Assembly: GCA_004431415.1 (NCBI GenBank)
Contig: QPMI01000259.1
Location: 1-64,000 of the forward strand
DNA from: Cyanophora paradoxa CCMP329
Taxonomy: Eukaryota > Plantae > Glaucophyta
Direction of reading: 5' to 3'
DNA: 64,000 nt
How positions within the stretch are numbered: position 1 is the first letter of the stretch; every line of letters starts with the position of its first letter. Below the pieces are notes generated by a model that saw only the letters and a list, made by a program, of their open reading frames with translations, did not search any database and was not told the origin of the DNA. Shown here in pieces: positions 4,627 to 59,585 of the stretch. Position numbers and translations under genes: made by a program.

Positions 4627-4667
<41 letters not shown>

Positions 4668-4781
4668 CCCTAACCTAACCCTAACCCTAACCCTAACCCT
4701 ACCCCTAACCCTAACCCTAACCCTAACCCTAACCCTAACCCTAACCCTAACCCTAACCTAACCCTAACCCTAACCCTAACC

Positions 4782-4822
<41 letters not shown>

Positions 4823-5480: not shown

Positions 5481-5521
<41 letters not shown>

Positions 5522-5613
5522 CCCTAACCCTAACCCTAACCCTAACCCTAACCCTAACCCTAACCCTAACCCTAACCCTAACCCTAACCCTAACCCTAAC
5601 CCTAACCCTAACC

Positions 5614-5654
<41 letters not shown>

Positions 5655-7261
5655 CCCTAACCCTAACCCTAACCCTAACCCTAACCCTAACCCTAACCCT
5701 AACCCTAACCCTAACCCTAACCCTAACCCTAACCCTAACCCTAACCCTAACCCTAACCCTAACCCTAACCCTAACCCTAACCCTAACCCTAACCCTAACC
5801 CTAACCCTAACCCTAACCCTAACCCTAACCCTAACCCTAACCCTAACCCTAACCCTAACCCTAACCCTAACCCTAACCCTAACCCTAACCCTAACCCTAA
5901 CCCTAACCCTAACCCTAACCCTAACCCTAACCCTAACCTAACCCTAACCCTAACCCTAACCCTAACCCTAACCCTAACCCTAACCCTAACCTAACCCTAA
6001 CTACCCTAACCCTAACCCTAACCCTAACCCTAACCCTAACCCTAACCCTAACCCTAACCCTAACCCTAACCCTAACCCTAACCCTAACCCTACCTAACCC
6101 TAACCCTAACCCTAACCTAACCCTAACCCTAACCTAACCCTAACCTAACCCTAACCCTAACCCTAACCCTAACCCTAACCTAACCTAACCCTAACCCTAA
6201 CCCTAACCCTAACCCTAACCTAACCCTAACCCTAACCCTAACCCTAACCCTAACCCTAACCCTAACCCTAACCCTAACCCTAACCCTAACCCTAACCCTA
6301 ACCCTAACCCTAACCTACCCTAACCCTAACCCTAACCCTAACCCTAACCCTAACCCTAACCCTAACCCTAACCCTAACCCTAACCCTAACCCTAACCCTA
6401 ACCCTAACCCTAACCCTAACCCTAACCCTAACCCTAACCCTAACCCTAACCCTAACCCTAACCTAACCCTAAACCCTAACCCTAACCCTAACCCTAACCC
6501 TAACCCTAACCCTAACCCTAACCCTAACCCTAACCCTAACCCTAACCCTAACCTAACCCTAAACCCTAACCCTAACCCTAACCCTAACCCTAACCCTAAC
6601 CCTAACCCTAACCCTAACCCTAACCCTAACCCTAACCCTAACCCTAACCCTAACCCTAACCCTAACCCTAACCCTAACCCTAACCCTAACCCTAACCCTA
6701 ACCTAACCCTAACCCTAACCCTAACCCTAACCCTAACCCTAACCCTAACCCTAACCCTAACCCTAACCCTAACCCTAACCCTAACCCTAACCCTAACCCT
6801 AACCCTAACCCTAACCCTAACCCTAACCCTAACCCTAACCCTAACCCTAACCCTAACCCTAACCCTAACCCTAACCCTAACCCTAACCCTAACCCTAACC
6901 CTAACCCTAACCCTAACCCTAACCCTAACCCTAACCCTAACCCTAACCTAACCTAACCCTAACCCTAACCTAACCCTAACCCTAACCTAACCCTAACCCT
7001 AACCCTACCCTAACCCTAACCTAACCCTAACCCTAACCCTAACCCTAACCCTAACCCTAACCCTAACCCTAACCCTAACCCTAACCTAACCCTAACCCTA
7101 ACCCTAACCACCTAACCCTAACCCTAACCTAAGGACTCGGCTAACCCTAACCCTAACCCTAAGGACTCGGCTAACCCTAACCCTAACCCTAACCCTAACC
7201 CTAACCCTAACCCTAACCCTAACCCTAACCCTAACCCTGACCCTGACCCTTACCCTTACCC
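1..7261. repeat. Telomere, (CCCTAA)n = TTAGGG type, left chromosome end
   Basis: ~7.2 kb continuous CCCTAA array from base 1, C-rich strand on +. It degenerates at 7106-7261 into CCCTGA/CCCTTA variants and two GGACTCGG insertions. Confidence 0.99.
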
Positions 7262-25535: not shown

Positions 25536-28500
25536 TCAGAAGCGCAGCCACCGTCCACTGCTGGACTGGGTCATGGGCGGGGCACCGGCCCCGTACGAGG
25601 GCACTGCAGATGGCTGATACGCCGATGGTTGATAAGCTCCACCAATAGGGGCGGCCATGTTCGGGGCCATGCCTGCGCCGGCCGGGATGTACTGCACCAT
25701 GCAATTCACCTGTGTGAATCCACGTTAGAAAACACCATCTGACAGAGCGTAGTGCACACCTGGCCAGGCGCCGTAGTCCGGCCATCAAGGGCAGTCAGGG
25801 GGAACCACTGTAGGACATGTGAAAAGCGGTTACACGTAGAAAATTACGAAAACACGCACGCGCTGGATGGGAGCGCCAGTAAGCAGTGTCTGGACGGGAA
25901 TCCGGAATTGGCCGAGCAAGTCATCTGTCATCCAACGATCCTCGTCCCTGCACACGAGGCCAGTCACAGATACGTCAAGTGTTCACCACACAGTGGGCAG
26001 ACCAAATCTGTACAAGCATCTCAGTCTCATCCACACCCTCCTTGAAGTCACTGCAAGGAGCGGCGTTACTGGAGGTGAAACTGAGCATGCTCTTCAGACG
26101 CACATCTGGAATTCTTCATTCCAAACTGGGTTGGTGTTCCCCTTGACAGTCTTCGTCCGCTTCGTCTTTGCTCCGAGCTGCAGTACCAGTCTCATCCAAC
26201 CAGCAGACACAAGGGGAAAAAATTCACCTTGACGATTGCATAAGGATCTGACTTGCCAAACGTATCCGCATCCTTCAAACCACGTGCTTCAAGCATGCGA
26301 ATCACGATGGTTCCTTGACGTAGACCACCAGCAGCAAATGGCTGAGGAGCGTTGAAACCAATATTTGTACCAGGGGGACCTTGCGGAGTCGGGGCTCCAA
26401 ACGCGGAGGCAGAGGCCCCAGGAATGAACTGGAGAACGACGTGGACCTGCGGGCAGCAGATGAGCCCCACAATTCTGAGCCCCTGTTCTCCACCCGCCTC
26501 ACGTCTCCGTGGTGCACCTGTCCTTGGGCAGGGGCCCGGCCGTCGATGGACGCGAGCGGGAACCACTGGTCCAGAGGCTGGCCGCCGATGAGGGCCTGCA
26601 CCGGGAGGCGCATCTGGCCAAGGAAATCGTCGCGCATGCCAACGTCCTCGTCCCTGTCAGGCAGTGGTCAGCCCGCATCCTGAGCACCACCCCCTTGCAC
26701 AACGGACCAGATCTGGAGGTGCAGCTCCGTCTCGTCGACACCCTCCTTGAAGTCCCTGCAAGCGCCCCGTGAGCGTTGCTGCTGTTCGACTGCACGCGCC
26801 CCCGCAACGCACAGTGCGAGCTCCTCGTTCCACACGGGGTTGAGGTTGTTCGGGATCGTCTTCGTCCGCTTCGTCTTCGCTCCGAGCTGCGCCCAAAATT
26901 TTCAGTACGAAGGTGCAAGCTGCGCGGCCGGGCAGCATGGGCAGGCCGCGCACCTTCAATACGGCGTACGGGTCAGACTTGCCGAACGTGTCCGCGTCCT
27001 TCAGGCCACGTGCCTCCAGGACGCGCGCGACAATCACTCCCTGGCGTAGGCCGCCGCCGGCCGTGAACGGAGCCGGCATGCCGCGCGGGGCGAACCCTCC
27101 CGCCGGCTGGCCGTACGCGTTCGGAGCACCCTGGGGCGCAGTCGCCCCAGGAATGAACTGGAAAACAACGTGGACCTGCGGGCAGCAGATGAGCCCCACA
27201 ATTCTGAGCCCCTGTTCTCCACCCGCCTCACGTCTCCGTGGTGCACCTGTCCTTGGGCAGGGGCCCGGCCGTCGATGGACGCGAGCGGGAACCACTGGTC
27301 CAGAGGCTGGCCGCCGATGAGGGCCTGCACTGGGAGGCGCATCTGGCCAAGGAAATCGTCGCGCATGCCAACGTCCTCGTCCCTGTCAGGCAGTGGTCAG
27401 CCCGCATCCTGAGCACCGTCCCCCTAGCACGACGGACCAGATCTGGAGGTGCAGCTCCGTCTCGTCGACACCCTCCTTGAAGTCCCTGCAAGCGCCCCGT
27501 GAGCGTTGCTGCTGTTCGACTGCACGCGCCCCCGCAACGCACAGTGCGAGCTCCTCGTTCCACACGGGGTTGAGGTTGTTCGGGATCGTCTTCGTCCGCT
27601 TCGTCTTCGCTCCGAGCTGCGCCCAAAATATTCAGTACGAAGGTGCAAGCTGCGCGGCCGGGCAGCATGGGCAGGTCGCGCACCTTCAATACGGCGTACG
27701 GGTCAGACTTGCCGAACGCGTCCGCGTCCTTCAGGCCACGTGCCTCCAGGACGCGCGCGACAATCACTCCCTGGCGTAGGCCGCCGCCGGCCGTGAACGG
27801 AGCCGGCATGCCGCGCGGGGCGAACCCTCCCGCCGGCTGGCCGTACGCGTTCGGAGCACCCTGGGGCGCAGTCGCCCCAGGAATGAACTGGAAAACAACG
27901 TGGACCTGCGGGCAGCAGATGAGCCCCACAATTCTGAGCCCCTGTTCTCCACCCGCCTCACGTCTCCGTGGTGCACCTGTCCTTGGGCAGGGGCCCGGCC
28001 GTCGATGGACGCGAGCGGGAACCACTGGTCCAGAGGCTGGCCGCCGATGAGGGCCTGCACTGGGAGGCGCATCTGGCCAAGGAAATCGTCGCGCATGCCA
28101 ACGTCCTCGTCCCTGTCAGGCAGTGGTCAGCCCGCATCCTGAGCACCGCCCCCCTAGCACGACGGACCAGATCTGGAGGTGCAGCTCCGTCTCGTCGACA
28201 CCCTCCTTGAAGTCCCTGCAAGCGCCCCGTGAGCGTTGCTGCTGTTCGACTGCACGCGCCCCCGCAACGCACAGTGCGAGCTCCTCGTTCCACACGGGGT
28301 TGAGGTTGTTCGGGATCGTCTTCGTCCGCTTCGTCTTCGCTCCGAGCTGCGCCCAAAATTTTCAGTACGAAGGTGCAAGCTGCGCGGCCGGGCAGCATGG
28401 GCAGGTCGCGCACCTTCAATACGGCGTACGGGTCAGACTTGCCGAACGCGTCCGCGTCCTTCAGGCCACGTGCCTCCAGGACGCGCGCGACAATCACACC

Positions 28501-30792
28501 CTGGCGTAGGCCGCCACCGTACGGGCCGGGTGCCCCTCCGTAGCCCAGACCTACTGCCGTGTTGGGAGCCGGATTCATTCCGACTCCTGCTGTCCGCGGA
28601 AGGAACTGGAACATTGCGAGAACCTGTCGAACGGGAACAGTTAAAGCTCGCACATTTCGAGGCACCGTATGATGTACCTGCCCCGGGAAGGGCCGGCTCC
28701 CGTCCATGCTCGAAAGCGAGAACCACTGCCGGCACTTCTAAGGACGCGATATGATTTCCTGGAATAGCTATCAGAACGTACGCGTTCAAGCGGCTGCCCG
28801 TGCATGAGATCCTGCAGGGAAATACGAAATCCGCCAATAAAATCGTCAGACATGCCCCGATCCTCATCGAAAACCTGCCCGAAGATTAGCTGCTTGTTGT
28901 AAAATAACCGGACCTCATCTTACTTGGACAACAAGCTCTGTCTCGTCGACACCCTCCTTGAAGTCCCTGCAAGCGCCCCGTAAGCGTTGCTGCTGTTCGG
29001 CTTCATGCGACCCCGCAACGCACAGTGCGAGCTCCTCGTTCCACACGGGGTTGAGGTTGTTCGGGATCGTCTTCGTCCGCTTCGACTTCGCTCCGAGCTG
29101 CAGGGGGCAATTAACGCTGTCCAGACGGCTTGCATGCGAAATCTGCAACCTTCACGATGGTGTACGGGTCCGACTTGCCAAACGTGTCCGCGTCCTTCAG
29201 GCCGCGCGCCTGCGAGAGTTCGTTGGACAATGCGAACTCTTCTACAATGCGATGCAGTGACTTGAGCACCTGCATGATTCGGCACACAACCAAGCCCTCA
29301 CGCATGTTCGACTGGCCCATGCCGCGAGGTGCGGCACCCATGGGCATCCCCCGCGCGCCAACGCTTCCGACTCCTCCCGGGGCGGTGGAAACGTACTGCA
29401 CAACGGCATGCAGCTGGCCTGGCTCCCCCTTCCGTCCGGTCTTCGACGCCAAAGCAAACCACTGAAGGGACATCGCCATGATTGAGGGTCTTCGTTTTAC
29501 AGAAGGCAGAAAAGGAATAGTTGCACACCCGTTCAATAGGGATGCCGGTGAGGAGCGACTGCACCGGAATGGTAACCTGGCCCAAGAAATCGTCCGGCAG
29601 ACCAACGTCCTCATCCCTTTTTGCGATTCAGAAATGCACGGCATTGCGAGAGCGCTATGCGATGGAACCACTAACCAGATCTGGATGTTCAACTCCGTCT
29701 CGTCGACGCCCTCCTTGAAATCCCTGCGAGGAGTGGTGAGAACTGCGTCGGTTCTGCTGCACGCTCCGTCACGGCGCACAGCTGCACTTCCTCGTTCCAC
29801 ACAGGATTAAGGTTGTTTCTGATTGTGCGGGTCCGCTTGCTCTTCGCACCAAGCTGCAAGAGGTCAGAAAAAAACAGGGCAGCACATGTCGAATTCGAAA
29901 GAACCTTAACGACTGCGTATGGGTCGGACTTCCCGACCATGTCTGTATCCTTCAGCCCACGAGCCTCGAGAACACGGACGACGATGAGCCCCTGCCGGAG
30001 CCCGCCAGATGGGGGAACGCGGTCGAGCCCCATGGGAGGAGCCGACATGCGACCCGGGATTGCGGCGTACTCCCCGCGCGTTCGAGATTCGTCCAATACG
30101 CCGCCCCGGTTTTCGAGCGTTGCGTTGCGGCGCTCTAACTCCGCGATCCGGCGCTTGAGCTCCGCGATGTCGTTGCTACCAAGACTCAGACGGCTGGACG
30201 GCGCGTAGCGATCTACTTCACGCTCCACTTCCTTGATTTTCATGCGGGCTCGTTCGACAGCCTCCCTCTCTGCGGCCAGCTGGGTCTGGAGGAGTCGGAG
30301 CGTTAGCAGTTAGCGCGGACGGCAGGGCTCCACGGCGAACCTTGAGCTGCACGTTCTCTTCTCGAAGCTCCAAGTTGTGTCCAAGAATCTCTGCGCGGAC
30401 GTTCGCCGTCGACGCCGTCCGCGGGAAGAGAGGTGCACGGGAACTCACCGCGGACAACGGCGTCCAGGTCCGCCCGGATGCGAGAAAGCTCGACAGCCGG
30501 AGCCCGCTGCGAACGCAACAGTACGTCGGCCGCGCAGCCTAGTGAAGGGACAAAACCCCACGAACCTGGAGCTCGGCCGAGGTCAACTGCGACTGAAGGG
30601 CGAGGGCCTTATGAACGAGTCCCTCCAGCCGGTTTCCAGCCCCCGACGGTGTCGGAGCCTGCAAGGCAGGCCCGAGGCGTTAAAGACTTGTATACGAACG
30701 GCGACCACCGTACGAACCGCAGGAGCCAGGGCTGCATCGCGATATCCACCGGCGCCATAGGCCGGCGCCAGGTAGCTGCCTCCGTAGGACAT
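25536..30792 (-). CDS. Coiled-coil + six tandem C2-domain protein
   Basis: Six copies of (L/M)R(Q/E)G.I..R.LEARGLKD.D.FGKSDPY...KRT.T..NN.NPVWNEE...WDED...DDFLG..W. N-terminal coiled coil; ends SSGRWLRF*. Confidence 0.9.
26420..28515 (-). repeat. ~730-bp tandem genomic duplication (3 copies) of a whole C2 module including its introns
   Basis: Near-identical sequence at offsets of 729-730 bp (e.g. 26499/27228/27958). Confidence 0.95.
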
Positions 30793-43064: not shown

Positions 43065-43310
43065 GTTGACCGTCGGAGCAGCAAGGAGGTTGCGAGAAAC
43101 CGCCCCGCCCGGGCCGACGAGCCACAACGAGCGATCGACGCAGCCGAAGCGCCTCGCCGCGGTTGCACTGCCCACCCGTACCCAACTGTCTTGGGTACAG
43201 CACCAAACTAGGCTACAGAATGAGATCGATCGAGGATTCTAAGAACGCCGGGCGCGCAGAGGCGCTCCGCTGCTCCGAATATCGTCACACTGTTGCGGCT
43301 GGGTGGACTC

Positions 43311-44326
43311 GTGCGCCGCCCGCGCCCGCCTCCCGCCGACCACGCGGCGAGCCCCCGCGCAGCACGTCGAAGAAGCCGAGAGCGCTGCCAGCACCGCCGA
43401 GGTCTGCTCGCCGCGTCACCCGCCGCCCGCTCCGAGCCGACGAGGCGATGCAGGAGCGGCTCGCGGGGGCCCTTGCGGAGCTCGCTGAGGCGGAGGCGCG
43501 GGCGCGGGAGGCCGCGGCGGGCCGCACACAGGCGGAGGAGGCGCGAGAAGCGGCCGATGGGCGCGCTGTGGCGTGCGCGGCGGAGGCAGCGGTGCTGAGG
43601 GAGGCGGCCAAGAGCGGCGAGGGCCGCGTGGCGGAGCTCGAGGAGCGGCTGACGGCGGCGGCGCTGGCGGCGCGCGCGATCCGCCTCATGGCGCTCTCCT
43701 TCGAGAACGACGCGGTCCGCGCCGGCCCGGCCCGCCGCCGCTGCCCGCCGGCCCTCTGACGCCCAGCCCCTTACGCGCCGCAGGCTGGCAAGGCGAAGGA
43801 CGGGCCGAGCAGCTCTGGCGACGGAGGCGATGCGGCCCAGGGCGTAGGGAGCAGTCCGGGGCCAGCGGGCGACCGGCACGATGCCGGCGGCGGCGCGGAG
43901 GGGGGCGACGAGGGGAGGGGGGTGCGCAGGACGGCTCGCTGATGAGCTTCGACCCGAGCAAATACGGCATGGCGCCCAACGGGGGCGACGGCGGCGAAAG
44001 CGCCAAGGAGCAGGGGCCCGAGGAGTCGGGGGATGGGGACGGGGCGGTGGCGGGCGGGGCGGAGCTGGAGGCGGCTGTGGAGGCGGCGCTGGCGGCGGCG
44101 ATGGCGTCACTGCGGGAAGAGGCGGAAGCAGCCACCGAGCTCGAGTCCCTGGTGCGCGCCCCAGCCCGCCCCGCCCCTGCCTGCCCCTCCCAGCTCCCGA
44201 TGCCCGCCCCGGCAGGCCCACGCGCACATGCCGGACGAGCTCGACTGGGCGGCCGAGGAGATGGGGGCCTGCGCGGAGGCAGCGTGGGATGCCGCCCTCG
44301 CCGCCGAGGCCTTCGGCGCGGCCTGA
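43311..44326 (+). pseudogene. Headless duplicate of the 3' exons of the 45195-47716 gene, with a frameshift
   Basis: Near-identical to 46701-47716. A G4 run (G5 in the other copy) near 43912 shifts the frame to TGA at ~43940. No ATG is in frame if the first intron is spliced. Confidence 0.55.
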
Positions 44327-45194
44327 CCGTTGCCCCGCCCAGCCGAAACTCCCACCCGCCCCCCTTTCTCACCCCGCTGCTCAGTTTGACTCTTCGAGGC
44401 TTTATTCACCAGTGAATCCTGGCCTTCGAAACTGTTGCCTGCCGCAGCACGCGTGCCTTCATTGGGGACTCGGGCCGGGGCGCGTCAGAGACCCGCCTAC
44501 CTTTTGGCAACTTTGCATTGCAGCTTGCGTCGACTCCGTGACCTTAAGGGATTCGAAGCGGCCAGCTGCGCTGCCTGTGCATGCAACGTTCGCCGCGTCC
44601 GCGAGTACTAAAGCTAATATAATTAATATTGAAATTAAATTGCGCTCTCGCCGAGCGGACGCGGCTGCATGCCGCAGTGCGCATATGCATGCTGCGCATG
44701 CACTACTACCGTAGTACGGTACTCGAGCTCAATGTGATCATGCATGACCAGTGCGCATGTGCATGCGCACTGCCAGACTGCGCATGCGCGGCATCGATCT
44801 CATCGACAACTGCGGCAAGCTTTAAGCCTTGCAAGGAGCCAAGCCGGCAGCGGCCCGCCACCGGTGTCAGGCTTGGAGCTCGCGGCTTGGTGGCATGAAA
44901 CCGCCTCTACCCCAGCCGAGCGCCTGGGAGCCTCCCAGCTCTTCATCTGCTGCAGCAGCCGTCGCCGTCGAGAGATAGCCACGCGTCAACAGCATCGTTC
45001 ATCAAAGTCGGACGCAGCAGGCGTCGTCCGCACGTCGGGCGGTTCCGCGCGCCCGTGGCAGGGCGCTCCTGGCAGTGGGGCGCGCGCGCTGGGAGTCATC
45101 TTGTCCCGCCGCTTCATCGTCAGTCGTTCAGCGGCTGCTTAGGCTAGTCTCGTTGCGCCGAGATTGAGCGCGTGCAGGATCCAGCAATCCGGCA

Positions 45195-47716
45195 ATGTCC
45201 AACGAGCCGGCGCTCGTTTTGTACGAGAAGCATCAGTTCAAGGACGACGATGGACCGGTACGCCGCCGGCGATCGGTCCCCCCTCCTTCGAGGCTGACTG
45301 TCGCGCAGACGTCTGTCGAGTACGAGTCGGGGCAGTGCTCAGAGATCGCGGGCACCTTGCGGGTCGGTTCCCTCAAGCTCGCAGAGGGCTTCAAGGCCTC
45401 TCTCTACGCCCGAGCGGGCTGCGAGGGCGAGCCGCTGCGTGTTGAGTTCGAGTCGGGGCAGCGAGTTGATGGGATCCTCTACGCCCCCGACGACACCGAC
45501 AAAGTTGACAGCCTCATCCAGTCCGTGAGAATAGGTGCATTTGTACAGGGTCCCCTCGCCGCGGCTCCCCGCCCTCACCACGTTGTCATGGCAGAAAAAG
45601 ACGGTGACGAGGCGGATGAGGATGAGATAGAGGAAGAGAGCAGGGACGTGGACACTGGCAGCACGAGCAACGATCCCAGCGCGCGTGCGTCGCACTGACG
45701 GGTTGGCGCGGTGTGGAGCTGAGGGTGCGGCAGGGGTGGCGGAGCTGCTGGTTCTCGAGGCGGAGTTGGAGGACCGGCGGGCGGCGATGGAGATCGCGCT
45801 GGAGGCGATGGGTCGCAAGGAGGATGCCCTTAAGGAGCGCGAGGCGAGCCTGGCTGACCGCGCCGACACCCTCGACAAGAAAGCGGACGCCGTGCGTCGT
45901 CGCCCCGCCCGCCCCGCCGTCCGCCGATGGCGGCGCAGGTGGAGAAGCTGGCGGCGGCCCTGGAGGAGCGCGAGGATGAGCTGGAGGAGCAGGAGGAGGA
46001 GCTCGCCGAGCGCGAAGCCTCGCTCGACAAGATGGAAAGCGCGGCCGCGAAGTACATCAAGGCGGCCGAGACCAAAGCGGCAAACGCAGAGGAGCGGGCC
46101 GATAAGCTGCGCGAGGAGGTCAGCGACCCGCAGGGCCCCGCAGCCGCCGGGCTCACGTCGCGCGCAGCTGAGCGCGGAGAAGGAGCGGGCCGAGAAGCTG
46201 GAGAAGGCGGCCGAGGCGGTGCGGGGGCCGGGCAGGGGCCGTTTCCCGGCCGCGCCGACCGGGCCGCGCAGGCGAAGGAGATGGCTGAAAAGCTGGAGGA
46301 AACTGCGGAGGAGGAGAAAGAGGAGCGGGAGGAGTGCGAGGAGCAGCTCGAGGTGCGTGGCGCGCGCCCCGCCGGCGCTAGCGCGCGGCGAGCGGGCGGC
46401 AGGCGGCGGAGGAGCGGCTGGAGGAGGCGCTCGGCGAGATCGCGCGCCTCAAGGGCGACCTTGCCGCCGGCTGCGGGGCCGGGGCGGGGGCCGGGGCCGG
46501 CGAGGGGGAGGACCCCGCCCTCAAGCAGTGCCGCGCGGAGAAGGCGCTCCTCCTCGACGACCTCCAGCGCGCCATCGAGGTCCAACCTTCCCCCCCGGGC
46601 GCTCCGCCCCGCCCCGCCGGCAGGCCCCTCACCCACCCGTTAGTCCCGCAACCTCCTCGTCACCAGCTCAGGCAGCGAAGCGCTGAGCGCCATGGAAGAG
46701 GTGCGCCGCCCGCGCCCGCCTCCCGCCGACCACGCGGCGAGCCCCCGCGCAGCACGTCGAAGAAGCCGAGAGCGCTGCCAGCACCGCCGAGGTCTGCTCG
46801 CCGCGTCACCCGCCGCCCGCGCCGGACGACGGGGCGATGCAGGAGCGGCTCGCGGGGGCCCTTGCGGAGCTCGCTGAGGCGGAGGCGCGGGCGCGGGAGG
46901 CCGCGGCGGGCCGCACACAGGCGGAGGAGGCGCGAGAAGCGGCCGATGGGCGCGCTGTGGCGTTTGCGGCGGAGGCAGCGGTGCTGAGGGAGGCGGCCAA
47001 GAGCGGCGAGGGCCGCGTGGCGGAGCTCGAGGAGCGGCTGACGGCGGCGGCGCTGGCGGCGCGCGCGATCCGCCTCATGGCGCTCTCCTTCGAGAACGAC
47101 GCGGTCCGCGCCGGCCCGGCCCGCCGCCGCTGCCCGCCGGCCCTCTGACGCCCAGCCCCTTACGCGCCGCAGGCTGGCAAGGCGAAGGACGGGCCGAGCA
47201 GCTCTGGCGACGGAGGCGATGCGGCCCAGGGCGTAGGGAGCAGTCCGGGGCCAGCGGGCGACCGGCACGATGCCGGCGGCGGCGCGGAGGGGGGCGACGA
47301 GGGGGAGGGGGGCGCGCAGGACGGCTCGCTGATGAGCTTCGACCCGAGCAAATACGGCATGGCGCCCAACGGGGGCGACGGCGGCGAAAGCGCCAAGGAG
47401 CAGGGGCCCGAGGAGTCGGGGGATGGGGACGGGGCGGTGGCGGGCGGGGCGGAGCTGGAGGCGGCTGTGGAGGCGGCGCTGGCGGCGGCGATGGCGTCAC
47501 TGCGGGAAGAGGCGGAAGCAGCCGCCGAGCTCGAGTCCCTGGTGCGCGCCCCAGCCCGCCCCGCCCCTGCCTGCCCCTCCCAGCTCCCGATGCCCGCCCC
47601 GGCAGGCCCACGCGCACATGCCGGACGAGCTCGACTGGGCGGCCGAGGAGATGGGGGCCTGCGCGGAGGCAGCGTGGGATGCCGCCCTCGCCGCCGAGGC
47701 CTTCGGCGCGGCCTGA
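45195..47716 (+). CDS. Beta/gamma-crystallin-like N-terminal domain + long acidic coiled coil
   Basis: Continuous spliced frame. LVLYEKHQFK...RVGSLKLAEGFKASLYARAGCEGE...LIQSVRI resembles Greek-key motifs; E/A/K-rich heptads follow. Confidence 0.75.
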
Positions 47717-48539
47717 CCGTTGCCCCGCCCAGCCGAAACTCCCACCCGCCCCCCTTTCTCACCCCGCTGCTCAGTTTGACTCTTCGAGGCTTTATTCACC
47801 AGTGAATCCTGGCCTTCGAAACTGTTGCCTGCCGCAGCACGCGTGCCTTCATTGGGGACTCGGGCCGGGGCGCGTCAGAGACCCGCCTACCTTTTGGCAA
47901 CTTTGCATTGCAGCTTGCGTCGACTCCGTGACCTTAAGGGATTCGAAGCGGCCAGCTGCGCTGCCTGTGCATGCAACGTTCGCCGCGTCCGCGAGTACTA
48001 AAGCTAATATAATTAATATTGAAATTAAATTGCGCTCTCGCCGAGCGGACGCGGCTGCATGCCGCAGTGCGCATATGCATGCTGCGCATGCACTACTACC
48101 GTAGTACGGTACTCGAGCTCAATGTGATCATGCATGACCAGTGCGCATGTGCATGCGCACTGCCAGACTGCGCATGCGCGGCATCGATCTCATCAACAAC
48201 TGCGGCAAGCTTTAAGCCTTGCAAGGAGCCAAGCCGGCAGCGGCCCGCCACCGGTGTCAGGCTTGGAGCTCGCGGCTTGGTGGCATGAAACCGCCTCTAC
48301 CCCAGCCGAGCGCCTGGGAGCCTCCCAGCTCTTCATCTGCTGCAGCAGCCGTCGCCGTCGAGAGATAGCCACGCGTCAACAGCACCGTTCAGCAAAGTCG
48401 GACACAGCAGGCGTCGTCCGCACGTCGGTCGATTCCGCGCGCCCGTGGCAGGGCGCTCCTGGCAGTGGGGCGCTCGCGCTGGGAGGTCATCTCGTCCTGC
48501 GTAGCTGGCTTTCGTCTTTGCTAACGTTGGCAATACAGG

Positions 48540-51278
48540 ATGTCGGCAGAAGCGGCTTGGGATGAGCCGGCGCGGACGGATCCTGCCGAATCGGATTCTC
48601 CCGCATCCAATGGGGAGTCCAGAGTTTCTCGGCTCACTGCCGAGCCGAGCGCCGCCGAGATCCCCGAGGCCGAACTCGTAGCCGCGTCCGAGATCTCCGG
48701 TGCTTCGTGGCACTCCGATGTTGCTGCAACGGTGTGCGGGAGCGCGTGTTTCGCCAGGCCCTCGCTGGTCTGATGTGTGCCCCAGACGCCGACGTCGGTT
48801 GCGGTCGACTCGCTTGACGATGCCTCATTCAAGGATCTCATCGCCAAGCTCGACGCTGTGCGCATCGCGCAGGTTACGCAGTCGAGCGTCGCTGCGCCGA
48901 CGCTCTTGTTCTCGTGCAGACGATTAACCGCGCGGGGGTGCCTGTGGAGGGCGCGCGGGTGGAGGCCCGGCCGGCGGCCGGCGTACCGGCGCCCTGGTAC
49001 CACGACGACGAGCACCACCACCACCACCACGACGACGACGACGAGCACATGGACCTGTGCGGGAAGACTGACTGCGAACGCGGCGTCCTTGTCCTCGAGG
49101 CTCGTCCCGCCCCCGCGCCCGCCCCGCCCGCCCCTCACCGCCCCGCAGGAGGAGTACGCCCGGCCCTTCATCGAAGTCGGGTGCGAGGGGCGGCCGCCGG
49201 TGGGCGCCGCGCGCTGACGCCGCGGCAGGTACCTGGAGCAGCGCGGGGGGGCCAAGGTCGTGGGGCAGGCGACCTACACGCAGCCGGCGCTGCGCCACGG
49301 GACCGCCACGTGCGCCAGCCGGGCCGCGGGGGCGCGGGGCGCGAGGCGACGGGGGCGCAGGATCAAGCAGGCGATGCTCGAGCGGGGCCGCGACGTCGTC
49401 ACGAACAAGGTCCACGAGCGAGGTGCGCCGACGCGGGCCGGCGTGGGGCCGGCGTGGGGCCGGCGCGGGCCGACGCGGGGCGGGGCGTGGGGGCAGGGCA
49501 CCTGGTGACGAAGCAGGAGGTGGTGCCGGACCGGGTCTACTTCGGGGAGCGCATCGACATGGTCACGGGTGGCGGGGAGGAGCAGGGCGGGCGCGAGCAC
49601 TTCCGCCCCCTCCCCGGGACGGAGCGCTTCGTTGGGGAGGGCTCGTGGTCCTCGGCGGGGCCCCTCGCCACCGACTCGCTCCGCTACACCGGCGACGCCC
49701 GCTACAGCGCCACCTCCAAGCACGTCTCCGAGGCCCGCCCCCCCCCCCCCCCCCCCCCCCCCACCCACCCCTCCCGCCCCGCGGCCCCGTCCCGGGCTGA
49801 GGGGTCGGGGCAGGCGAGCCTGCGCTTCGGGGAAGTGGAGCTGCGGGCGGGGGAGCTCCTGAGGCTGCCGATCTCGGTGGACGGGCGCGTGCTGACGTGC
49901 GACCGCGTCCCCGAGGTCCTCAAGAAGCTCGTCCCCACCACCGACTTCAAGATCCTCTCCTCCGTCAAGGCCGCCGCCCCCTGCGGGGTCCGCCCCGCCC
50001 CCGACGCCCCGGCCCCCGCCCCGCCCGCCCCCGCCGACGCCGCCGCAGAGCTGCGAGCAGGTGCAAGTGGTGGCGGCGCAGCCGTACGAGCTGAAGTACG
50101 CCGAAACGGAGGCGCGGACGTGGGAGCGGCCGGCGGAGGCGGCGGGCAAGGGTTCGGTGCACCAGCACGGGCGGGTCGAGGGCGAGGCCGCCTACGAGCG
50201 CCTCGTCAAGGTCGTCGGCATGTACGCCATCCCCGCCAAGGAGGTCCGCCAGCGCGCCCCGCCGCCCACCCCCGCCGCCGGCGCTCACGCGGCGCAGACG
50301 GGCCGCATCAAGACCTGGCTCCACGAGGTCGTTGAGGACCGGGCGGTGCAGGAGGGGGCCCCCCGCCCCGACGGCCGCCCCCTCCTAGTCCCCGTCGGCA
50401 AGCCCCACGTCGTCGGTGCGCCCCGCACGCCCCCGCCCCGCCCCGCTGCCGCCGGCCGACTCGGGGGATGGCGAGCAGACGTGGTGGCGGGGGAGGCGCG
50501 GGTGGCGCCGGGGAGCGAGCCGGAGTACCGCAAGGTGCCGGGGACGGAGCGGGTGGTCGGCGAGGGCGGCTCCGGGGAGGTGAAGACGAGCAAGGCGGGG
50601 ATCATCGTCGGCGACGTCCAGCTCCGCGAGATCTACCGCGCCGACTCCGTCCCCGTCCCCAAGCTCATCGACTTCCGCGGCCGCCAGATCCCCGACGTCC
50701 GCCCGCCCCGCCCCCGCCCCGCCCCGTCCCGCGCGCGCCGAGCGGCGCCGCAGAGCGAGATCGAGAAGCTCGGGGAGCGCAAGATCATCACGCGGGCGTC
50801 GGAGCTGCTGGAGACGGGGCGCAAGTACTGCCCCATCGAGCCCCGCAAGATCATCGGCGTGGAGCCCGACGAGCCCGAGGAGCCGATCGTCCTGCCCCCG
50901 GCCCCGCCGCCCCGCCCGGCGCCCCTCCCGGAGCCCCTGCCGCCCCCGGAGCCGGCGCCCGAGCCGGCGCCCGAGCCGGAGCCCTTCTTCCCGCCGGCCC
51001 CGGAGCCGCTCCCCGCGCCGCACGGGGACGGCTCCTGCTGGGGCTCCCCGGAGCAGCTGCCCCCCGCCGGCCTCGCCGCCCTCGAGGCGGGGGAGGCCTG
51101 GGGCGGGGCGGGCGCCGAGGCGGCCGAGGGCGGCGAGCTCGAGCTCGAGGGCGGCGCCGAGGCCGAGGCCGACGAGGCCTTCGTCGAGGGCCCCGACTAC
51201 CTCGGGACCGGCCTCGAGGCGGAGGCCGCCGAGGCCGCCGACTGCCCCGACCCCCTCGACGCGCCCCTCTGCGCCTGA
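48540..51278 (+). CDS. Unknown protein: His/Asp patch, V/E/P-rich internal repeats, Pro-Glu tail
   Basis: In-frame spliced model with strong GC3 codon bias. Internal repeat FRPLPGTERFVGEG / YRKVPGTERVVGEG. Stop TGA at 51278. Confidence 0.75.
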
Positions 51279-51438
51279 GAGGCCTCGCGATTTGGCAGCG
51301 AGCGTGCCATGATGTTCCACCCCAACTGTCCCACGGCTTATTTTCTCGTGTTCTCGTCATGAATATTAGGAATATTAGAACTCAATCCACTAGGCTAGAG
51401 TAACTGCTCCAGTTTCTGGCAGCTTCGATGGAGGCGCG

Positions 51439-54400
51439 TCACGGGCCGTGTACGCTACTGTTGGCGCTGCCAGCACTCTGAAGCGACGGGCCGGGGGGCA
51501 GAGGGGCCCCGGGCGCCGGCGCGGCGGGGCGCGGCATCGCCTCGAGGGCCTGGCGGGGGGTGGGCGGGGCGCGGGGCGGGGTGGGCGGGGCGGGGCACCT
51601 TGGCGAACTCCCTGGCGGCGGGGTCCTTGCGGCGGGCGAGCACCTTCGCCACGTTCCGCTTCGTCATCGGCTCGTGTGGGCTGTACGACACCTCCGGCCT
51701 GCCCCCCGCGCCCCGCTCGCCCGCCCCGCCCCGGGGTCCCGCGGAGGAGGGCCGGCACACAGCGTGGGGAAGAGAGCGATGAGCTCGCGCGTCGTCGGCT
51801 GGAAGAGGGTGTTGAGCGTCTTGTGCACGACCTTGGTGCGGCTCGCCACGTCTGTCCGCCCCTCGGCGCGCGGCGGGGCGCGGCGGGGCGCGGCGGGACG
51901 GGGCGCGGCGCGGGCGGCGGGCGGCGCACCGGGCTCCTCGAGGCCGCAGACCTTGCCGTCGGCGTCGCGGGCGACCCAGAACTCCTCCACCGTCTGCGCC
52001 CCGCTCGCCCCCCCGCCCCGCCCCCGCCCCTGCGCCCCGCCGCCCCGCGCGCCTTCAGGTCCTCCGCGAGGGCGTCGTAGTCCTGCGCGGCGGTGAGGGC
52101 GGGCGCGGGGGCGGGGGGGGGCGGGCGGAGCGGGCGGGCGCCTTCTCGCTGAACTGCCGGTTGGGGCACTCCATGAGGATCTTGACGAGGCAGTCGACCC
52201 TGGCGCCGGCGTCAGCGCCGCCGGCCGGCCGGCCCCGGCGGCCCCGCGCACTGCGCCTTGAGGATGCCGTGGAGCGTGAGGATCTGCACCAGCTCATCCT
52301 TGACTGCGCCGCCGTCTCGCGGGGAGCGGGCGGGGCGGGGGGGCGGGGGCGGGGGCGGGCCGTGGTCGCGGATGGCGGAGAGGAGCGGGGAGAGGGCGTC
52401 GAGGACGGGGGCGACGCCGCGCTTGTCCTCGCCGGGGCTCGGCACGTAGAGGGCCTCGTAGAAGACGGGCCGCAGGTCGACGTACACGACCTTCGCCCCG
52501 ATGAACTTGACCAGCTCGTCCGTCGTCGACTCCAGCGAGAGCAGGCACCCGTCGAAGAGCTGCCGCCCGTCACCCCCCGCCGCCCCCGCCCCCCGGCCCC
52601 GCACCTTCTCGTCGAGCGCCGGCGGCGGCGCGCCCTCCGCGGGGAAGAGCAGCAGCCACTTCTTGCGCATGTCCTGCCGCCCCCTGAGGGGGGGCGGGGG
52701 CGGGCGGGGGCAAGGCGGGCCTGCTCGAGGGAGAGGATGGACTCGCGGGCGAAGTGGAGGTTGTTGAGCTTGGTGAGGAGCTGCGCGGCGTCAAGCGGGG
52801 CGGGGGCGGGGGCGGGGCGGGGCGGGCCTCGTGGAGGGCGGCGAGGGAGCGGGCGGCGGCGGCGGGGTCCCGCTCCGCTGCCTTCTCGCTCTTGAGCGCC
52901 CGCATCACCGCGCTCGCCGCCTCCTTCAGCCGGCTCCCCGTCCCCGCCGCCGGCATCAGCGCGCTCTGCCCCCGACCCGTCAAGCCCCCGCCCCCGACCC
53001 GTCAAGCCCCCGCCCCCGACCCGTCAAGCCCCCGCCCCCGCCCCGCCCCGCCCGGGAGGCGCACGCGGGGCCCGCAGGAGCGGAGGACGTGCATCGCGTA
53101 TTTCTGGCGCGGGGTGAGGCGCGGGTCGGGTGGGGCGCGAGCGGGGCGGGGGCGGCGCCTGCATGATGCCGTCGATGGAGAGGGCGAGGGTGGAGATGCA
53201 CTCCGGGGGCAGGGGGATGCCGAGGTCGTACACGAAGGGCACCGTCTGCGCGAACATGGCGAAGAGGTCCATCACCGACGCCGAGATCCTGGCCCCGCCC
53301 CGTCACCCCCCGCCCCGCACCGCCGCCCCCCCGCCGGCGGCCGCACATGAGGTTCTCGTCGACGGGGCGCCAGGTCTCCATGGCGAGGCAGCGCTCCAGG
53401 CACGCGCTGAACGCCACGTGCTGCAGCTGCAGCCACTCCGAGAGCTGCCACCCCGTCACGCCCCCGCCCGCCCCGCGCGCGGCACCCTGCTCACCAGCGG
53501 TCCGTAAAGGCGCGAGAGCTCCAGAAGGAGGGCCTGGGGCGGCTCAGGCAGGGCGGGAGGGGCGGCGGGGGCGGCGGACGGCGCGGGGGCCGGGGAAGGC
53601 GCCGAGGGCGGCGAGGTGCGCCTGGAGCTCCTTGAGGTGGTGGAGCAGGCGCTGGGCGACGGGGTCCAGCGCCCGCCGCGCCTGCAGCGAGCGGTGGCAG
53701 TCCCCCGCGAAGAGCCGGCTCAGCTCCTCCAGCGCCACCTGCACCGCCCACCGGCACCCGCACGCCCCCCCCGCCCCCCGCGCCGCCCCGCCCGCCCCGG
53801 CCCCCTCCGCTCCGCCCGCCCCGCAGCGGCAGCCCCAGCGGTTGTAGGCGTGGGCGATCTCCTGCGGGGCGCGGGGTGAGGGGCGGCGCGGGACGGGGTC
53901 GGGGGCGGGGGCGGACGGCGATCTGGGCGGCGGCGGTGGCGCGGAGGTGGTCGGCGAGGGCGAGGAGGCCCTCCATCTCGACTGGACGCTTCGCCTGCGC
54001 CGTCGTCCGCTCGTACTCCTTCGCGACGGTGCTCACGAGCAGCATCGCCACCTCCGCCGCGTCCTCCTCCTCCCGCTCCACCGTGCCCCACCCCGCCTCC
54101 TCCGCCACCGTCCCCGCGCCCCGCCCCGCCCCGGCCCCCTCCTGCAGCCGCTGCGGGTCCCCGGCCGGTCGCTGCGCCGCCGCACCGGCCCGACGACTCG
54201 GCGGCCGGCGCGGGGCCGGGCCCGGGGTGGGCCTCGGGGTTGGGGCGCGGGGCTCGGGGGCGAGGGAGAACGGTGGGGGCGAGGGGCGGGCGGAGGACCC
54301 GGCGGGGCGGGGCGAGGGCGGGGGCGGGGGCGAGGGCGGGGCGGGGAGGGCGAGGGAGCCGTCGGAGGGGAGCGGGGCGGCGAGGCCGGCGGCGTCCATG

Positions 54401-57400
54401 AGGCGCTTGAGGAGGATGTACACCTCGAGCTCCTTGGCGAGGGTCGCCCCCTCCCCCGCCCCGAAGTACCGCAGCGCGTCCGCCAGCCGCGTCGCGAAGA
54501 ACTCCCGCACCGCGCACAGCGCCCCTGCCCCGCCCCGTCCCACGTCCGCCCCGCCCCCGCCCCGGGCGGCCGCCCCGCGCACCCGTCATGTAGGCGCGCT
54601 CGGGGTCGTTGGCGGGGCCTGCGGGGCGCTCGGGCGGGGCGGCGGGGCCGGGGCGGGGCGGCGGACGGCGGGGGAGGTTGAGGACGACGGCCTTCTTGAG
54701 GGCGGCGAGGGCCGCCGCATGCCCCGCCCGCCCCGGCTGCTGCCGCGCGTAGTGCCGCCACAGGCACACAAGCACGCTGCGCCCCGCTCAACGCCGCGAA
54801 GGCAAGCTGGGGCGGGGCGGGGCTCGCCAGAGCTCGTGCATGAAGGGGGTGACGGCGAGGTGCGGGCGCACGGCCGCCAGCGCCTCGAGCAGGGCCGGCT
54901 CCTCCGGCGGCGCCTGCCCCGCCGTCGGGCCCCGCGCGGGGTGGGGCAGGGCGGCGGGCGCACGGCGACGGCGTCCTCGCGGGCGTAGCACGAGCGCACG
55001 AGGCGCTCGTACAGCTGCGCCGCGTCAGCGGCGCCGCGCGAGTCGGCTGGCGCCGGCGCGGCGGGCGGGGCGGGCCTGGAGGTTGATGGGGTAGGGGATG
55101 GGGAGGGTGTACTTCTGGGCCGGCGTGCCGTCGTCGCCGGCGGCGCGATCGAGGGCGCGGTAGAGCTGCTGCACAAACGAGTCCACCTCCCGCAGCGTCC
55201 CCGCGTACCCCTCCTCGTCCAGCTCTGCCCCGCCCACGCCGCGTGGCGCCTCGGGCGGGGCGGGGCGGGGCGGGCGGGGCGCGCACCGCCCGAGGCCTTG
55301 AAGGGGAGCTCCTTGAGCTGCTGCATGAGCTGCCCCAGCCGCCCCTTCACCTCCTCCCCCGTCATCTGCGCCCGCGTTGGCCCCCGCCCCGCCCCGCCCC
55401 GCCCCCGCCCCGCCGGCCGCACGTCGCGCTTCTTGATCTTGAAGTCGGAGGCCCCCGAGCGGCGCACCGCCCACAGCAGCCCGTTTGCGAAGAGCGCGAT
55501 CTGGCGGCCGGTGAGGGCGGCGAGGGCTGGTGCGGGGGGCGTGGGCCGGGCGGCGCGCCTGCCGGTCCTGCCACGCCTTGAACTCGGACTTCTTGTCGAA
55601 GTCGGCGGGACGGCGGCTCTTGAGGAGCATGAAGCGGTAGTGGAGGTGCGGGCGCAGGGCGTTGAGCGAGGGCACGCGCCGGTTCGTGTCCGGCGAGAGC
55701 GGCCGCAGCTTCAGGCGCGCCACGATCCGCTGGTGCTCCCGCAGCGTGATCCCCGCGTTCACCCGCACCGCCCCGCACACCCGGTCCGCCTCCTGCGCCC
55801 CGTCGCCCCGCCGCCCCGCGCGAGGGGGCCGGGCGGGGCGCGCACGGCGTCGGCCCCCATGAGCTCCGTGCAGAGGACGAGGTGCTCGTAGGCGGCGGCC
55901 TGCGGGGCCTCGGCGCGAGGGCGAGGAGGCGGCGCGGGGGGCGACGCGCACGCTGAGGTGCTCGTCGTTGAGGTAGAGGTCGCCGGGGGGCAGGGCCACC
56001 CGCTGCGTCTCCTCCACCCCCCGGAAGCGCGCGTACAGCTGCTCCAGCCGCACCTGCAGCGCCCGCCGCCGCGCCGCCGCTGTCTCCGCCGGCCCCGCCG
56101 CAACGCCGCCCTCCTCCTGCGCCTCCGAGAGCACCGCGCTCTGCGCCGCGTCGCCCCTTCTGCAGGGCGCCGGGGCGGGGACGCGGGGCGGGGGACGAGG
56201 GGCGCACGAGCTGCCCCGGGGAGACGTCTACGTAGCGCTCGAAGCACTGGCGGCCCGTCAGCGGCCGGCGGCGCAACGCGCCGGCCTGCGCACCTGCGAG
56301 ATGAGGCCCAGGAAGCGCGGCGGGTGCGCCGGCGGCGCCGGTGGGCGCGCCTCGAGCTGCGCGACGTCAGCGGCGGGAGGGGAGACGGGGTCGGGGCGGC
56401 GCGCCTCCATGCCGAAGCGCCAGCCGAGGTCAACCACCTCCTCCTGCCACGGCGGCTCCTCCGGCCAAGGCGCCCCCTCCCCGCCCCGCCCCGCCGGCGA
56501 GGCCCCTGCCCGCGGCGGGGGCGAGGCCCCCTCCTCGACGCCCCGCTGGACGGGCACCATTGCGGCCTGCGCGCGGGGCTCACGCGGGGTGCCCGGCGTG
56601 CGGCGTGCGCGGGGCGGTGCCTGCTGCGGGGCCGGGGCGAGGGCCGGCGTGGCCTGGAGCTCCGGGGGGCGGCCCGCGGCGTGCTCGCCCTGCCCAAAGC
56701 GCGCGGCGAGCTCCTGTGGGCGCCTCAGGCGCCCCGGCAGCGGCGGCGGGGGCGAGGGGGGCAGGGGGCGCCTTCTCGAACTCGATGGTCTTCTGCATGG
56801 CGAAGAGGATCGCCCCGTCGCTGTCCGCCTGCTCGCGCCGGCTGTCCAGCAGGAGCTGCGCGCGGTCAGCGCCGCTGCGGGGCTGCCGGCGCGGGGGGAA
56901 CCTGGAGAGTCTTGCGGGTGAGGGAGCAGAACTCGGCGCAGAGGGCCTCCGCCACGCCCCAGCCCGCCGGGAAGAGGCCCCCGAAGCTGCCCCCGCCCCC
57001 GCCTCACCCCCCGCGGCGGCGCGGCGGCGGGGCGGCGGGCGGGCACCGGCGCTCGAGCTCGGCGAGCTGCCCCCGCATCCACGCGAAGCGCCGCTCCGTC
57101 GCCTCCAGCGTCGCGAACTGGCCCCCCGCCGCGAACTCCCCGTGCGTGTACCCCTCCAGCTGCAGGCGGCAGAACCAGGTGACGAGGTCCTTGCTGCGGG
57201 GGGTGAGGGGGCGGGGGCGGGGGCCGGGGGCCGGGGCGCGGACCGGGCGTCGGGGCCGAGGGCCTCGACGACCTTGCAGGCCTCCTGCAGGCGCCCGAGC
57301 TGCTGTCCGTCCCCCGGCATCGCCACGTACCTGCCGCGCCCCCGTCCGCCCCCGCCGCCGCGGCGCCGCGCCGCCGCCGCCGCCGCCCCCGGCTGCGCAC

Positions 57401-58486
57401 GTGGAGAACTGGTCGAAGATCTGGCGGCGGAGGATGGTCCGGACTTCGGCGACGGCCTCGCGGATGCGCGCCAGCTCCGCGATGTCCGCGTACCCCACCA
57501 GCCGCCCCAGCACTTGGTTCGTCGCCTGCCGCCCCCGCCCCTCGCCCCGCGCCCCGCGCCCCCCGCCCCGGGCCCCGGCGGGGGCACCTCGAGGTACACC
57601 GCCGCCTGCCGGTAGTCCACCTGCTCCGCGAAGCCCTTGAGCAGCACCGACGCTTGCACTGCCCGCCCCGGCGTCGCCCCACCGGTTTGCGGCGGGCCCG
57701 CGGGGCGGGGCGCACGGAGGAAGCGGACGCGGAGGAGCGTGTTGACTTCGTCGGCGAGGGCCTGCGCGGCGGTGTGCACGCTGGCGCCGGCGGCGACGGT
57801 GGGGCGGCCTCACCCGCTTGGCGCACTCCAGGGGCCGCAGCTCCGTGATGAAGACGCCCGTGGAGAGCTCCGCCTCCTCGCACCGCGCCTTCAGGTTCGC
57901 GAAGCGCTCCCGCAGCTCCTGCGCGCCCCGCCCCTCGGCCCCTCTCCCCGCCCAGCGCGCCGCACGCATGCGCACCCGAATGCGGCTCCCGGCCGCGGCG
58001 ATGTCGTGGTGGGCCTTGGAGACGGACATCACGCCGTGCACCATCTCGTCCGTCATCCGACGCATCTTCGTCTGCAGCTTGTTGATGTACGGGCCAATGT
58101 TCGTCAGCGATTGCACTGCCGCCGTCTCCGCGTTAGCTCGCGCCGCGCTGAGCGACGGCAACGAGTGGCTGGCGACCATGGCGGCGGCCCGCACCGTCCG
58201 GGAACGTTTTAGTAACGAACGCGGCGATCTTGGGGTCGAGATTCTCGTCCAGGCAGGTCTCATTCTCAGCAGCGCCTGCGCGCCAACACAGTGAGCACCC
58301 ACTGGCGCGACATCGCTGCTGCGGCACGACGCTCGTCGCTCGAACGAGCGCTGCGCGATTCGAGAGCACCGCACCATCGTCCAGGCTCCGATGCGCGCTG
58401 CTCACGGCGGCAATGCGGTCCGAGATGCTCGCCGCCAGCGACGCCGGCGGGCCGTCTTCATCAGACTCACTGTCAGAGTAGACCAT
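51439..58486 (-). CDS. Vps53 N-terminal-like domain fused to a PATROL1/Munc13-like (DUF810/MUN) domain
   Basis: N-half: ELRPLECAKR, ERRFAWMRGQL, LFPAGWGVAEALCAEFCSLTR, ILFAMQKTIEFEKELAARF, RFLGLISQCFERYV (Vps53-like). C-half: LLKSRRPADFDKKSEFKAWQDRQIALFANGLL, YPINLQLYERLVRSC, AKVVYVDLRPVFYEALY, VLARRKDPAAREF (PATROL1-like). The splice-joined frame is continuous across the junction. Confidence 0.75.
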
Positions 58487-58683
58487 CTCGCGGCGAGGGC
58501 CGTCAAGCGTCAGCTTTGGCGAGTCGGGTCGGGCCCGGTCGGGCCGGGCCGGGTCGGCTGAGGGGGGGATACACTGAGTCAGCCGGCTCCAGTTGATCCG
58601 CAAACGCAGCCAACCAAACCCACACACAACCCCCAAGTTCGACAGCAGCGAGCGCTCGACAGCAGCGAGCGCTCGTGCGAGCG

Positions 58684-59449
58684 ATGGGCCTGCGAGTTGT
58701 GCCCCATGTAATCGACGGCGCATTCCTCATCGAATGCGACCGCTTCCACGATAACCGGGGCTTCTTCCAGGCTCGCTTCCCCCGTCTCATCGATCGCTCT
58801 AGCTAACTGCCGTCCAGGAGTTGTACAAGAAGACGACCTACCCGGAGAGCATGGTGCAGGAGTGGGGCCAGATCAACATTAGCATGTCCAACAAGAACGT
58901 CGTGCGCGGGATGCACACGTCGCCCTACCCCAAGGTGCGCTCCCTCGCGGCACATCGGTTGGCGGCTGTAGCTCACGCGCGCGGGAACAGCTGGTGTGCG
59001 TGATGCGGGGGCGGCTGATCGACATCGTGGTGGATCTGCGCGAGGGCTCCCCGACCTACCTGAAGCAGTCGGTGACGGAGCTGTCGGCGGACGTGCCGCG
59101 CCAGAGCTACATCCCCGCCGGCTGCGCGCACGGCTTCTACACCTGCGAGGACGACACCGCCATCCTCTACATGCAGGTCCGCCCGCGCGCGGCGGCGGGG
59201 CGGGCGGCTCGGCGGGGCGGGGCGGGGCGCGAGAGGGCGGGGGCGCAGGGCGTCTTTGACCCGGCACGGGAGATGGACGTGAACTGGCGGGACGCGACGC
59301 TGGCGATCGCGTGGCCGGCGAGCGACGCGTACGTCCTCTCCGACAAGGACCGCAACGCCCCCGACCTCGCCACCTCCCGCCGCAACCTCGCTGAGCGCCT
59401 CGCGCGAGCCCGAGAAGCTGAGAGCAGGGCGCCCCAGCCCCCCGGCTAG
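58684..59449 (+). CDS. rmlC: dTDP-4-dehydrorhamnose 3,5-epimerase (cupin), 4 exons
   Basis: IDGAFLIECDRFHDNRGFFQE...QINISMSNKNVVRGMH...KLVCVMRGRLIDIVVDLREGSPTY...YIPAGCAHGF...WRDATLAIAWP...LSDKD. Introns at 58771 (GC donor), 58935 and 59177. Confidence 0.93.
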
Positions 59450-59585
59450 CGTTGGGCGCCCCACCTTCGACCTCTCCCGGAGTCACGGTCCCGGCCCGGC
59501 GGAATCCTGGGCTGTTGAAGCTTTAGATTTCAGATTTCACCGTACCCCTGGGCCTCCGCCCGGCCAGCGGTCGCCGGCCTGGCGA

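Follow-up and report, generated by a model that had tools for sequence, protein, structure and literature searches.

Organisation of the fusion gene

The stretch analysed here, hereafter the window, comprises the first 64,000 nucleotides of contig QPMI01000259.1 from the assembly of the glaucophyte Cyanophora paradoxa CCMP329 (GCA_004431415.1). Its minus strand carries a gene of 42 exons, from an ATG at 58486 to a TGA at 51439, in which the N-terminal part of Vps53, a subunit of two tethering complexes, GARP (Golgi-associated retrograde protein) and EARP (endosome-associated recycling protein), is joined to a PATROL1/DUF810 protein (Table 1). An earlier note on this DNA had claimed a single splice-joined frame from Vps53-like motifs through a linker exon into a Munc13-like MUN domain. 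Such a frame indeed exists: by script translation the spliced model gives 4,683 nt and 1,560 codons with no internal stop, RNA contigs cross the junction on their way from exon 1 to exon 26, 56208 is the end of the exon with the CFERY..PGQL sequence, and exon 16 is the linker exon.

CAG closes every one of the 41 introns; 29 of them begin with GT and the other 12 (29%) with GC. Their median length is 57 nt, 28 of them are not divisible by 3, and their A+T share is lower than that of the exons. The distance from exon 15 to exon 17 is 308 nt, and between 56208 and 55899 there is no stop, spacer or ATG, the earliest in-frame ATG (55860) lying inside the PATROL1 part.

The gene's own database protein, P0001 (EukProt Cyanophora paradoxa tig00001093_g6891.t1, or g6891; 1,591 aa), corresponds exon for exon to the 42-exon model, apart from retaining introns 12 and 13 in frame (56357-56404 and 56567-56620), both of which are spliced in RNA contigs, and placing the exon 28 donor at 53494, for which 53485 is the second candidate. 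An additional G at 56585 in DNA run X1 would disrupt the EukProt read-through frame of 56567-56620. Exons 26 and 27 may hold further in-frame introns where they are of low complexity. In the segment 54130-54360 the same DNA run shows single-base insertions at 54158, 54188 and 54235, net in frame and probably assembly slips; a hidden intron is possible there because the RNA contigs do not reach it and the second species described below lacks the segment.

Evidence for a single transcript

Transcription was assessed on short-read contigs, from runs whose RNA status was guessed. Sampled words of the locus were present to 93-96% in 14 DNA samples and to 45% in four RNA-like runs, the latter value being close to the exonic share of the gene. 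Single contigs of 2,761-2,768 nt from runs X15, X17 and X18 (two studies) lie in order on exons 1, 13, 16, 18, 21 and 26, skip the introns and link exon 1 to exon 26 across the Vps53/PATROL1 junction. In each of these runs the contig coordinates show zero offset from the model at eight checkpoints out of eight, and therefore the summed lengths of exons 1-26, the spliced path over the junction and the removal of introns 12 and 13 are confirmed. At 56100-55900, where separate transcripts might have ended and started, spliced contigs in three runs cross instead. Contig depth is similar at both ends of the gene, with 29-42 on the 5' contigs and 36-43 over exon 27 and the 3' contigs. The RNA contigs start at 58554-58560, which gives a transcribed 5' leader, and are interrupted within exons 26-27, where the sequence is GC-rich; none of the listed contigs covers the entire gene. 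At the DNA level an unbroken contig spans 55420-57333, including the junction; given this contig and the word content of the 14 DNA samples, an assembly chimera was rejected. The fusion gene is thus real and expressed, and it is conserved.

Domain content of the two halves

The window model was searched against Pfam exon by exon, and whole-protein searches used P0001. Vps53_N (PF04100) was matched in order by exons 3-4, 7, 9 and 10 (E 0.06, 0.06, 1e-5 and 2e-4; profile 17-292 of 372), and in P0001 it covers residues 57-509 with an E-value of 3.3e-59 (profile 8-351 of 372), as the earlier call of a Vps53 N-domain predicted. The score of 201 bits, and of 255 bits in the second species, compares with a gathering cut-off of 26. 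Furthermore, in the second species the assignment is specific to Vps53, with E 1.3e-75 against 2e-6 for Vps54_N and 0.02 for COG4_N. Within this half, the insertion encoded by exons 12-14 terminates in a conserved F-x-G-x-I-S motif.

In the C-terminal half, TPR_PATROL1 (PF25761) was matched by exons 29, 30 and 34-35 (E 0.16, 0.13 and 2e-7) and by residues 1178-1527 of P0001 (E 8.7e-41). The match is above the gathering score (140 bits, and 160 bits in the second species) and near full length (profile 3-368 of 419). MUN (PF06292) reaches 40 bits in P0002, the PATROL1-half protein of the second species, and a weak 14 bits in P0001. The DUF810 half preceding MUN has no profile match in the Pfam copy used; its Atlas feature score of 0.88 is nearest to PATROL1 clusters and serves as a lead only. 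No match was obtained for VPS53_C (PF16854), either in P0001 (E<=0.1) or in either half of the second species' contig (E<=5), nor any Pfam match for C1 and C2 domains in P0001 or in these halves.

The Vps53 part has therefore lost its own C-terminal module and the PATROL1 core stands in its place. The added piece appears to be the entire PATROL1/DUF810 core, some 1,000 residues with four-helix bundle, helical stack and MUN, so that the PATROL1 part of the earlier call stands while its restriction to a MUN domain was too narrow. The junction itself lies in exon 16, which contains the end of a modelled helix begun in exon 15, a 27-residue linker helix and then, probably, the first PATROL1-type residues, the exact boundary being inferred. 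An AYE-x-x-x-x-C motif where exon 16 meets exon 17 presumably marks, as in Arabidopsis sequences, the beginning of the DUF810 core; if it does, the fusion point would lie within exon 16 rather than at an intron.

Structure models

Monomer models were built from 2-3 sequences and have a mean predicted local distance difference test score (pLDDT) of 52-54 and a predicted template modelling score of 0.31-0.35. The Vps53 part is modelled as a helical run of about 110 residues (P0001 65-175) and helical bundles onward to about residue 368 (pLDDT 60-83), followed by a disordered insertion and two short helices that close it near residue 525. Further on come the linker helix, a four-helix bundle (~635-760) and a MUN-type stack. 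The best structural matches of the Vps53-part bundles are Munc13-1, Exo70, Munc13-4, Cog5, Exo84, Tip20 and ZW10; their VIA Z scores of 10-12 are modest and within the range of helical bundles in general, and they were counted only because proteins of the CATCHR class (tethering-associated complexes that contain helical rods) fill the top rows.

With Foldseek, all four matches of the C-terminal half at E<0.001 were Munc13-1 or Munc13-4, with E 1e-4 to Munc13-1, while the junction model gave nothing at E<=0.001. In the Atlas fold comparison of P0002 residues 3-684, the two best matches were PATROL1 clusters (template modelling score 0.36-0.37 over 446-452 aligned residues). Sequence searches of the PDB returned Munc13 weakly (E 0.014) and no match for Vps53_N.

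Probable occurrence of the fusion in a second species

A representative search with exons 34-36 gave four matches, P0001 to P0004. P0002 (869 aa) is encoded on L001, an intron-free JGI contig of 4,478 nt and about 50% GC from IMG sample 3300017186, which we infer to be the transcriptome of another glaucophyte. Upstream on this contig a frame of 507 codons carries Vps53_N and shows 46% identity to P0001 1-575, a range that takes in the junction exon; Vps53 part and linker are stop-free up to a run of ten Ns (1585-1594). The frame of 903 codons that starts immediately behind this run is 48% identical to P0001 576-1591 and matches TPR_PATROL1 (E 1e-46) as well as MUN (E 3e-10). On the window the two halves lie in the same order; some 8 residues are lost in the gap, where the join rests on assembler scaffolding. 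The second species thus very probably makes the same Vps53-PATROL1 fusion, as a check of related transcriptomes for this architecture had been meant to reveal. Given the 46% and 48% identity of the halves, the architecture is likely to be old and both halves under selection. Among the best-kept stretches is the start of the coiled coil, P0001 47-96, which is 72% identical between the two species.

In the PATROL1 half of both species four cysteines are conserved (CxC ... CxC, then Trp), at 53800-53750 in the window and at about 2861-2890 in L001, corresponding to C389, C391, C395 and C397 of P0002. They could bind metal or be acylated for membrane attachment.

The match to P0003 (Calx-beta) was rejected as a spurious alignment of proline runs. 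P0004 is a short PATROL1-like fragment (Pfam E 1.4e-7) at 444-857 of L002, a 1.2-kb eukaryotic contig of an ENA metagenome. Word-index searches for homologues returned nothing, P0001 alone, or P0001 and P0002, and are insensitive, having also missed plant PATROL1 and normal Vps53. Likewise, scans of metagenome contigs found no relative and missed even L001, so they have no bearing on absence; a normal Vps53 was returned from no species by these searches, which are too insensitive to speak to its absence.

Comparison with known tethering proteins

The fusion resembles Vps53 (PF04100 and PF16854) in its N-terminal coiled coil and helical bundles, over positions 8-351 of the 372 of PF04100, and differs from it by the lack of VPS53_C, its length of about 1,560 aa against about 830, a low-complexity insertion in the N-domain and a distal arm that comes from a different family. 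With PATROL1/DUF810 proteins (PF25761; Arabidopsis At5g06970) it shares an apparently complete core with TPR_PATROL1 and MUN and without C1 or C2, but it carries some 520-560 Vps53-derived residues in front. Compared with Munc13-1, Munc13-4, BAIAP3 and CAPS, it has the MUN fold, the only significant Foldseek family for its C-terminal half, but identity is 12-14% and no C1, C2 or calmodulin sites were detected. None of these four is known to carry a Vps53 N-terminus. Plant PATROL1 has no known domain besides MUN/DUF810 (PMC3731666), to which the fusion adds Vps53_N, and while the family has been called plant-specific (PMC5899483), the fusion is an occurrence in a glaucophyte.

The N-terminal coiled coil of Vps53 is the part that builds the GARP/EARP core; residues 1-169 of VPS53 are in the modelled GARP core, and N-terminal regions of VPS53 also bind SNAREs of the trans-Golgi network (TGN) (PMC10094427). 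At the other end, the Vps53 C-terminus is MUN-like and a remote homologue of MUN (PMC10094427). Human VPS53 mutated in this MUN-like arm is still found in EARP and loses its proximity to VPS33B, a Sec1/Munc18 (SM) protein (PMC13405132, preprint), and for this reason assembly and arm are separable. The swap is thus like for like in fold, since the Vps53 tail is already MUN-like (PMC10094427) and tied to SM/SNARE contact (PMC13405132). Hence the C-terminal replacement claimed by the earlier note fits the missing VPS53_C match, but it exchanges one MUN-like arm for another and introduces no new kind of module. Regarding PATROL1, the Arabidopsis protein binds the exocyst subunit Sec10 (PMC5899483) and brings cargo to the plasma membrane (PMC3731666), and Sec10 and Vps53 belong to one CATCHR group (PMC8290106).

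Proposed role and alternative explanations

The protein probably works as a Vps53/PATROL1 hybrid. We propose that an old gene fusion placed the N-terminal part of Vps53, with coiled coil and first helical bundles, ahead of a complete PATROL1/DUF810 protein, the C-terminal arm of Vps53 being dropped in the event. The coiled coil would still pair with Vps51, Vps52 and either Vps54 or Vps50, and the fusion would take the Vps53 seat in a GARP/EARP-type tetramer. Its longer PATROL1 arm would reach the other membrane and contact a SNARE/SM pair of different specificity, which may change the choice of vesicles tethered and fused, most likely on TGN/endosome or recycling routes towards the cell surface. 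Without C1 and C2, the fusion would not itself sense calcium or lipid. On sequence grounds we somewhat favour this assignment to a GARP/EARP-type tetramer with a PATROL1 arm of other SNARE/SM specificity, and the conserved start of the coiled coil is its main sequence support. Several points weigh against it: the low-complexity insertion of about 90 residues interrupts Vps53_N, the monomer models, though consistent, are weak overall and fall below a pLDDT of 50 at the junction, the GARP seat may be taken by a normal Vps53 encoded separately, and priming has only been proposed even for Arabidopsis PATROL1 (PMC5899483). A stronger form, in which the fusion would be the only Vps53 of glaucophytes and all their GARP/EARP would carry a covalent Munc13-type arm, is rather doubtful; if true, it would be a natural CATCHR arm swap by which a SNARE-priming factor is coupled directly to a tethering complex.

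The most serious alternative, to which we give appreciable though clearly lower weight than to the tetramer assignment, is that the fusion is real and its Vps53 part acts outside GARP/EARP, with a separate normal Vps53 running GARP. That part could then be a rod extension, a dimerisation module or an exocyst/COG link for a PATROL1-type secretion factor. Indeed, the PATROL1 core appears complete and could function by itself, as it does in plants (PMC3731666), plant PATROL1 operates with the exocyst (PMC5899483), Vps53_N has a long variable insertion and a normal Vps53 may exist elsewhere in the genome, but the 72% identity of the coiled coil and the 201-255 bits of the domain fit a retained partner surface. 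An unlikely explanation is a retained ancestral state, PATROL1/Munc13 having arisen from a Vps53-like tether whose old N-terminus was kept here without any fusion. Both halves are CATCHR-type helical rods, and MUN and the Vps53 C-terminus are remotely homologous (PMC10094427), but the N-terminal part is specifically Vps53 and no generic CATCHR start, the PATROL1 part has its own bundle, stack and full MUN in a protein about twice the size of a normal CATCHR subunit, and no Vps53_N is found among the Pfam families of the Atlas-listed PATROL1 clusters. Least probable of all is that a truncated Vps53 and an adjacent PATROL1 gene are joined merely by annotation, read-through or assembly: short-read contigs can merge overlapping transcripts, the RNA status of the runs was guessed, no listed contig spans the whole gene and the second species has its ten Ns at the junction, but two separate genes were rejected on the junction without stop, spacer or ATG, the spliced contigs of exact offset and similar depth in three runs, the continuous DNA and the second species' frame, which is stop-free up to the gap and whose aligned halves are short by only about 8 residues.

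Returning to the fusion as such, the architecture was put forward as undescribed, and no earlier report was found: among the papers searched, none pairs Vps53 with PATROL1, with DUF810 or with Cyanophora, and the single one that mentions both glaucophytes and Munc13 is unrelated. This fusion of two known trafficking families is thus apparently undescribed, although a domain-architecture database may list g6891 of EukProt without comment. CATCHR subunits are thought to be modular, a coiled coil at the N-terminus serving assembly and a MUN-like arm at the distal end engaging membranes and SNAREs; the grounds for this view are mostly structure and remote homology. The fusion looks like a natural test of this modularity, as it combines the assembly end of one family with the arm of another and has been kept across two species with only 46-48% identity. 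Furthermore, it extends the "plant-specific" PATROL1 family to glaucophytes and, like many gene fusions, hints at a joint action, here of PATROL1-type proteins with a CATCHR complex, in line with the contact between plant PATROL1 and Sec10. Two questions become testable: can the Vps53 arm be replaced by a MUN arm, and do PATROL1 proteins prime SNAREs?

Map of the gene and its neighbourhood

Table 1. Parts of the Vps53-PATROL1 fusion gene in the window
Feature	Position	Strand	Evidence
Whole fusion gene, 42 exons, ~1,560 aa	51439..58486	-	Spliced model, P0001, RNA contigs
Transcribed 5' leader, at least 69-74 nt	58487..58560	-	RNA contig starts
Exons 1-2: acidic, probably flexible N-terminus, then first Vps53_N helix	58195..58486	-	Spliced model, Pfam, structure model
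Exons 3-6: long N-terminal helix/coiled coil of Vps53 (P0001 ~65-175)	57588..58115	-	Pfam, structure model
Exons 7-11: Vps53_N helical bundles, CATCHR fold	56772..57525	-	Per-exon Pfam; model pLDDT 60-83; CATCHR structural rows
Exons 12-14: Pro/Ala/Gly-rich, poorly conserved insertion within Vps53_N	56294..56713	-	L001 alignment, RNA, structure model
Exon 15: end of Vps53_N match, CFE-x-Y motif	56208..56246	-	Pfam to P0001 509; kept in L001
Exon 16: junction exon	55952..56140	-	RNA contigs bridge; 36-48% identity in L001; modelled helices
Exons 17-21: start of PATROL1/DUF810 core including four-helix bundle	55076..55899	-	Atlas feature lead (0.88), Atlas fold match, models
Exons 22-27: PATROL1 helical stack, MUN start, low-complexity insertions, four-cysteine motif	53580..55014	-	L001 alignment, Pfam, models
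Exons 28-41: C-terminal MUN part, TPR_PATROL1 (P0001 1178-1527)	51599..53533	-	Pfam, Foldseek
Exon 42: Pro-rich tail and stop codon	51439..51549	-	Spliced model

Upstream of the fusion gene, a dTDP-4-dehydrorhamnose 3,5-epimerase gene (58700-59450, plus strand; Pfam E 8e-26) stands head to head with it at a few hundred bases. On the downstream side, RNA contigs of about 3,760 nt starting at 53777 would extend some 2.3 kb beyond the fusion stop codon (48914-51439); overlap of the 3' ends probably makes them merge with a convergent plus-strand gene that ends near 51278, and the raw open reading frames of that gene gave no Pfam match. The window is a chromosome end, with a TAACCC telomeric array at 1-7237, and the fusion gene lies about 44 kb inward from the inner edge of this array. 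Between them are a long coding tandem repeat with an Ala/Glu-rich coiled-coil unit (15136-18769, plus strand), a gene with several near-identical tandem C2-domain modules (26657-29800, minus strand; weak Pfam C2 match) and, within 43200-47800, a block of about 1 kb that occurs twice, near 43.2-44.4 kb and 46.7-47.8 kb, with near-identical translations of its open reading frames.

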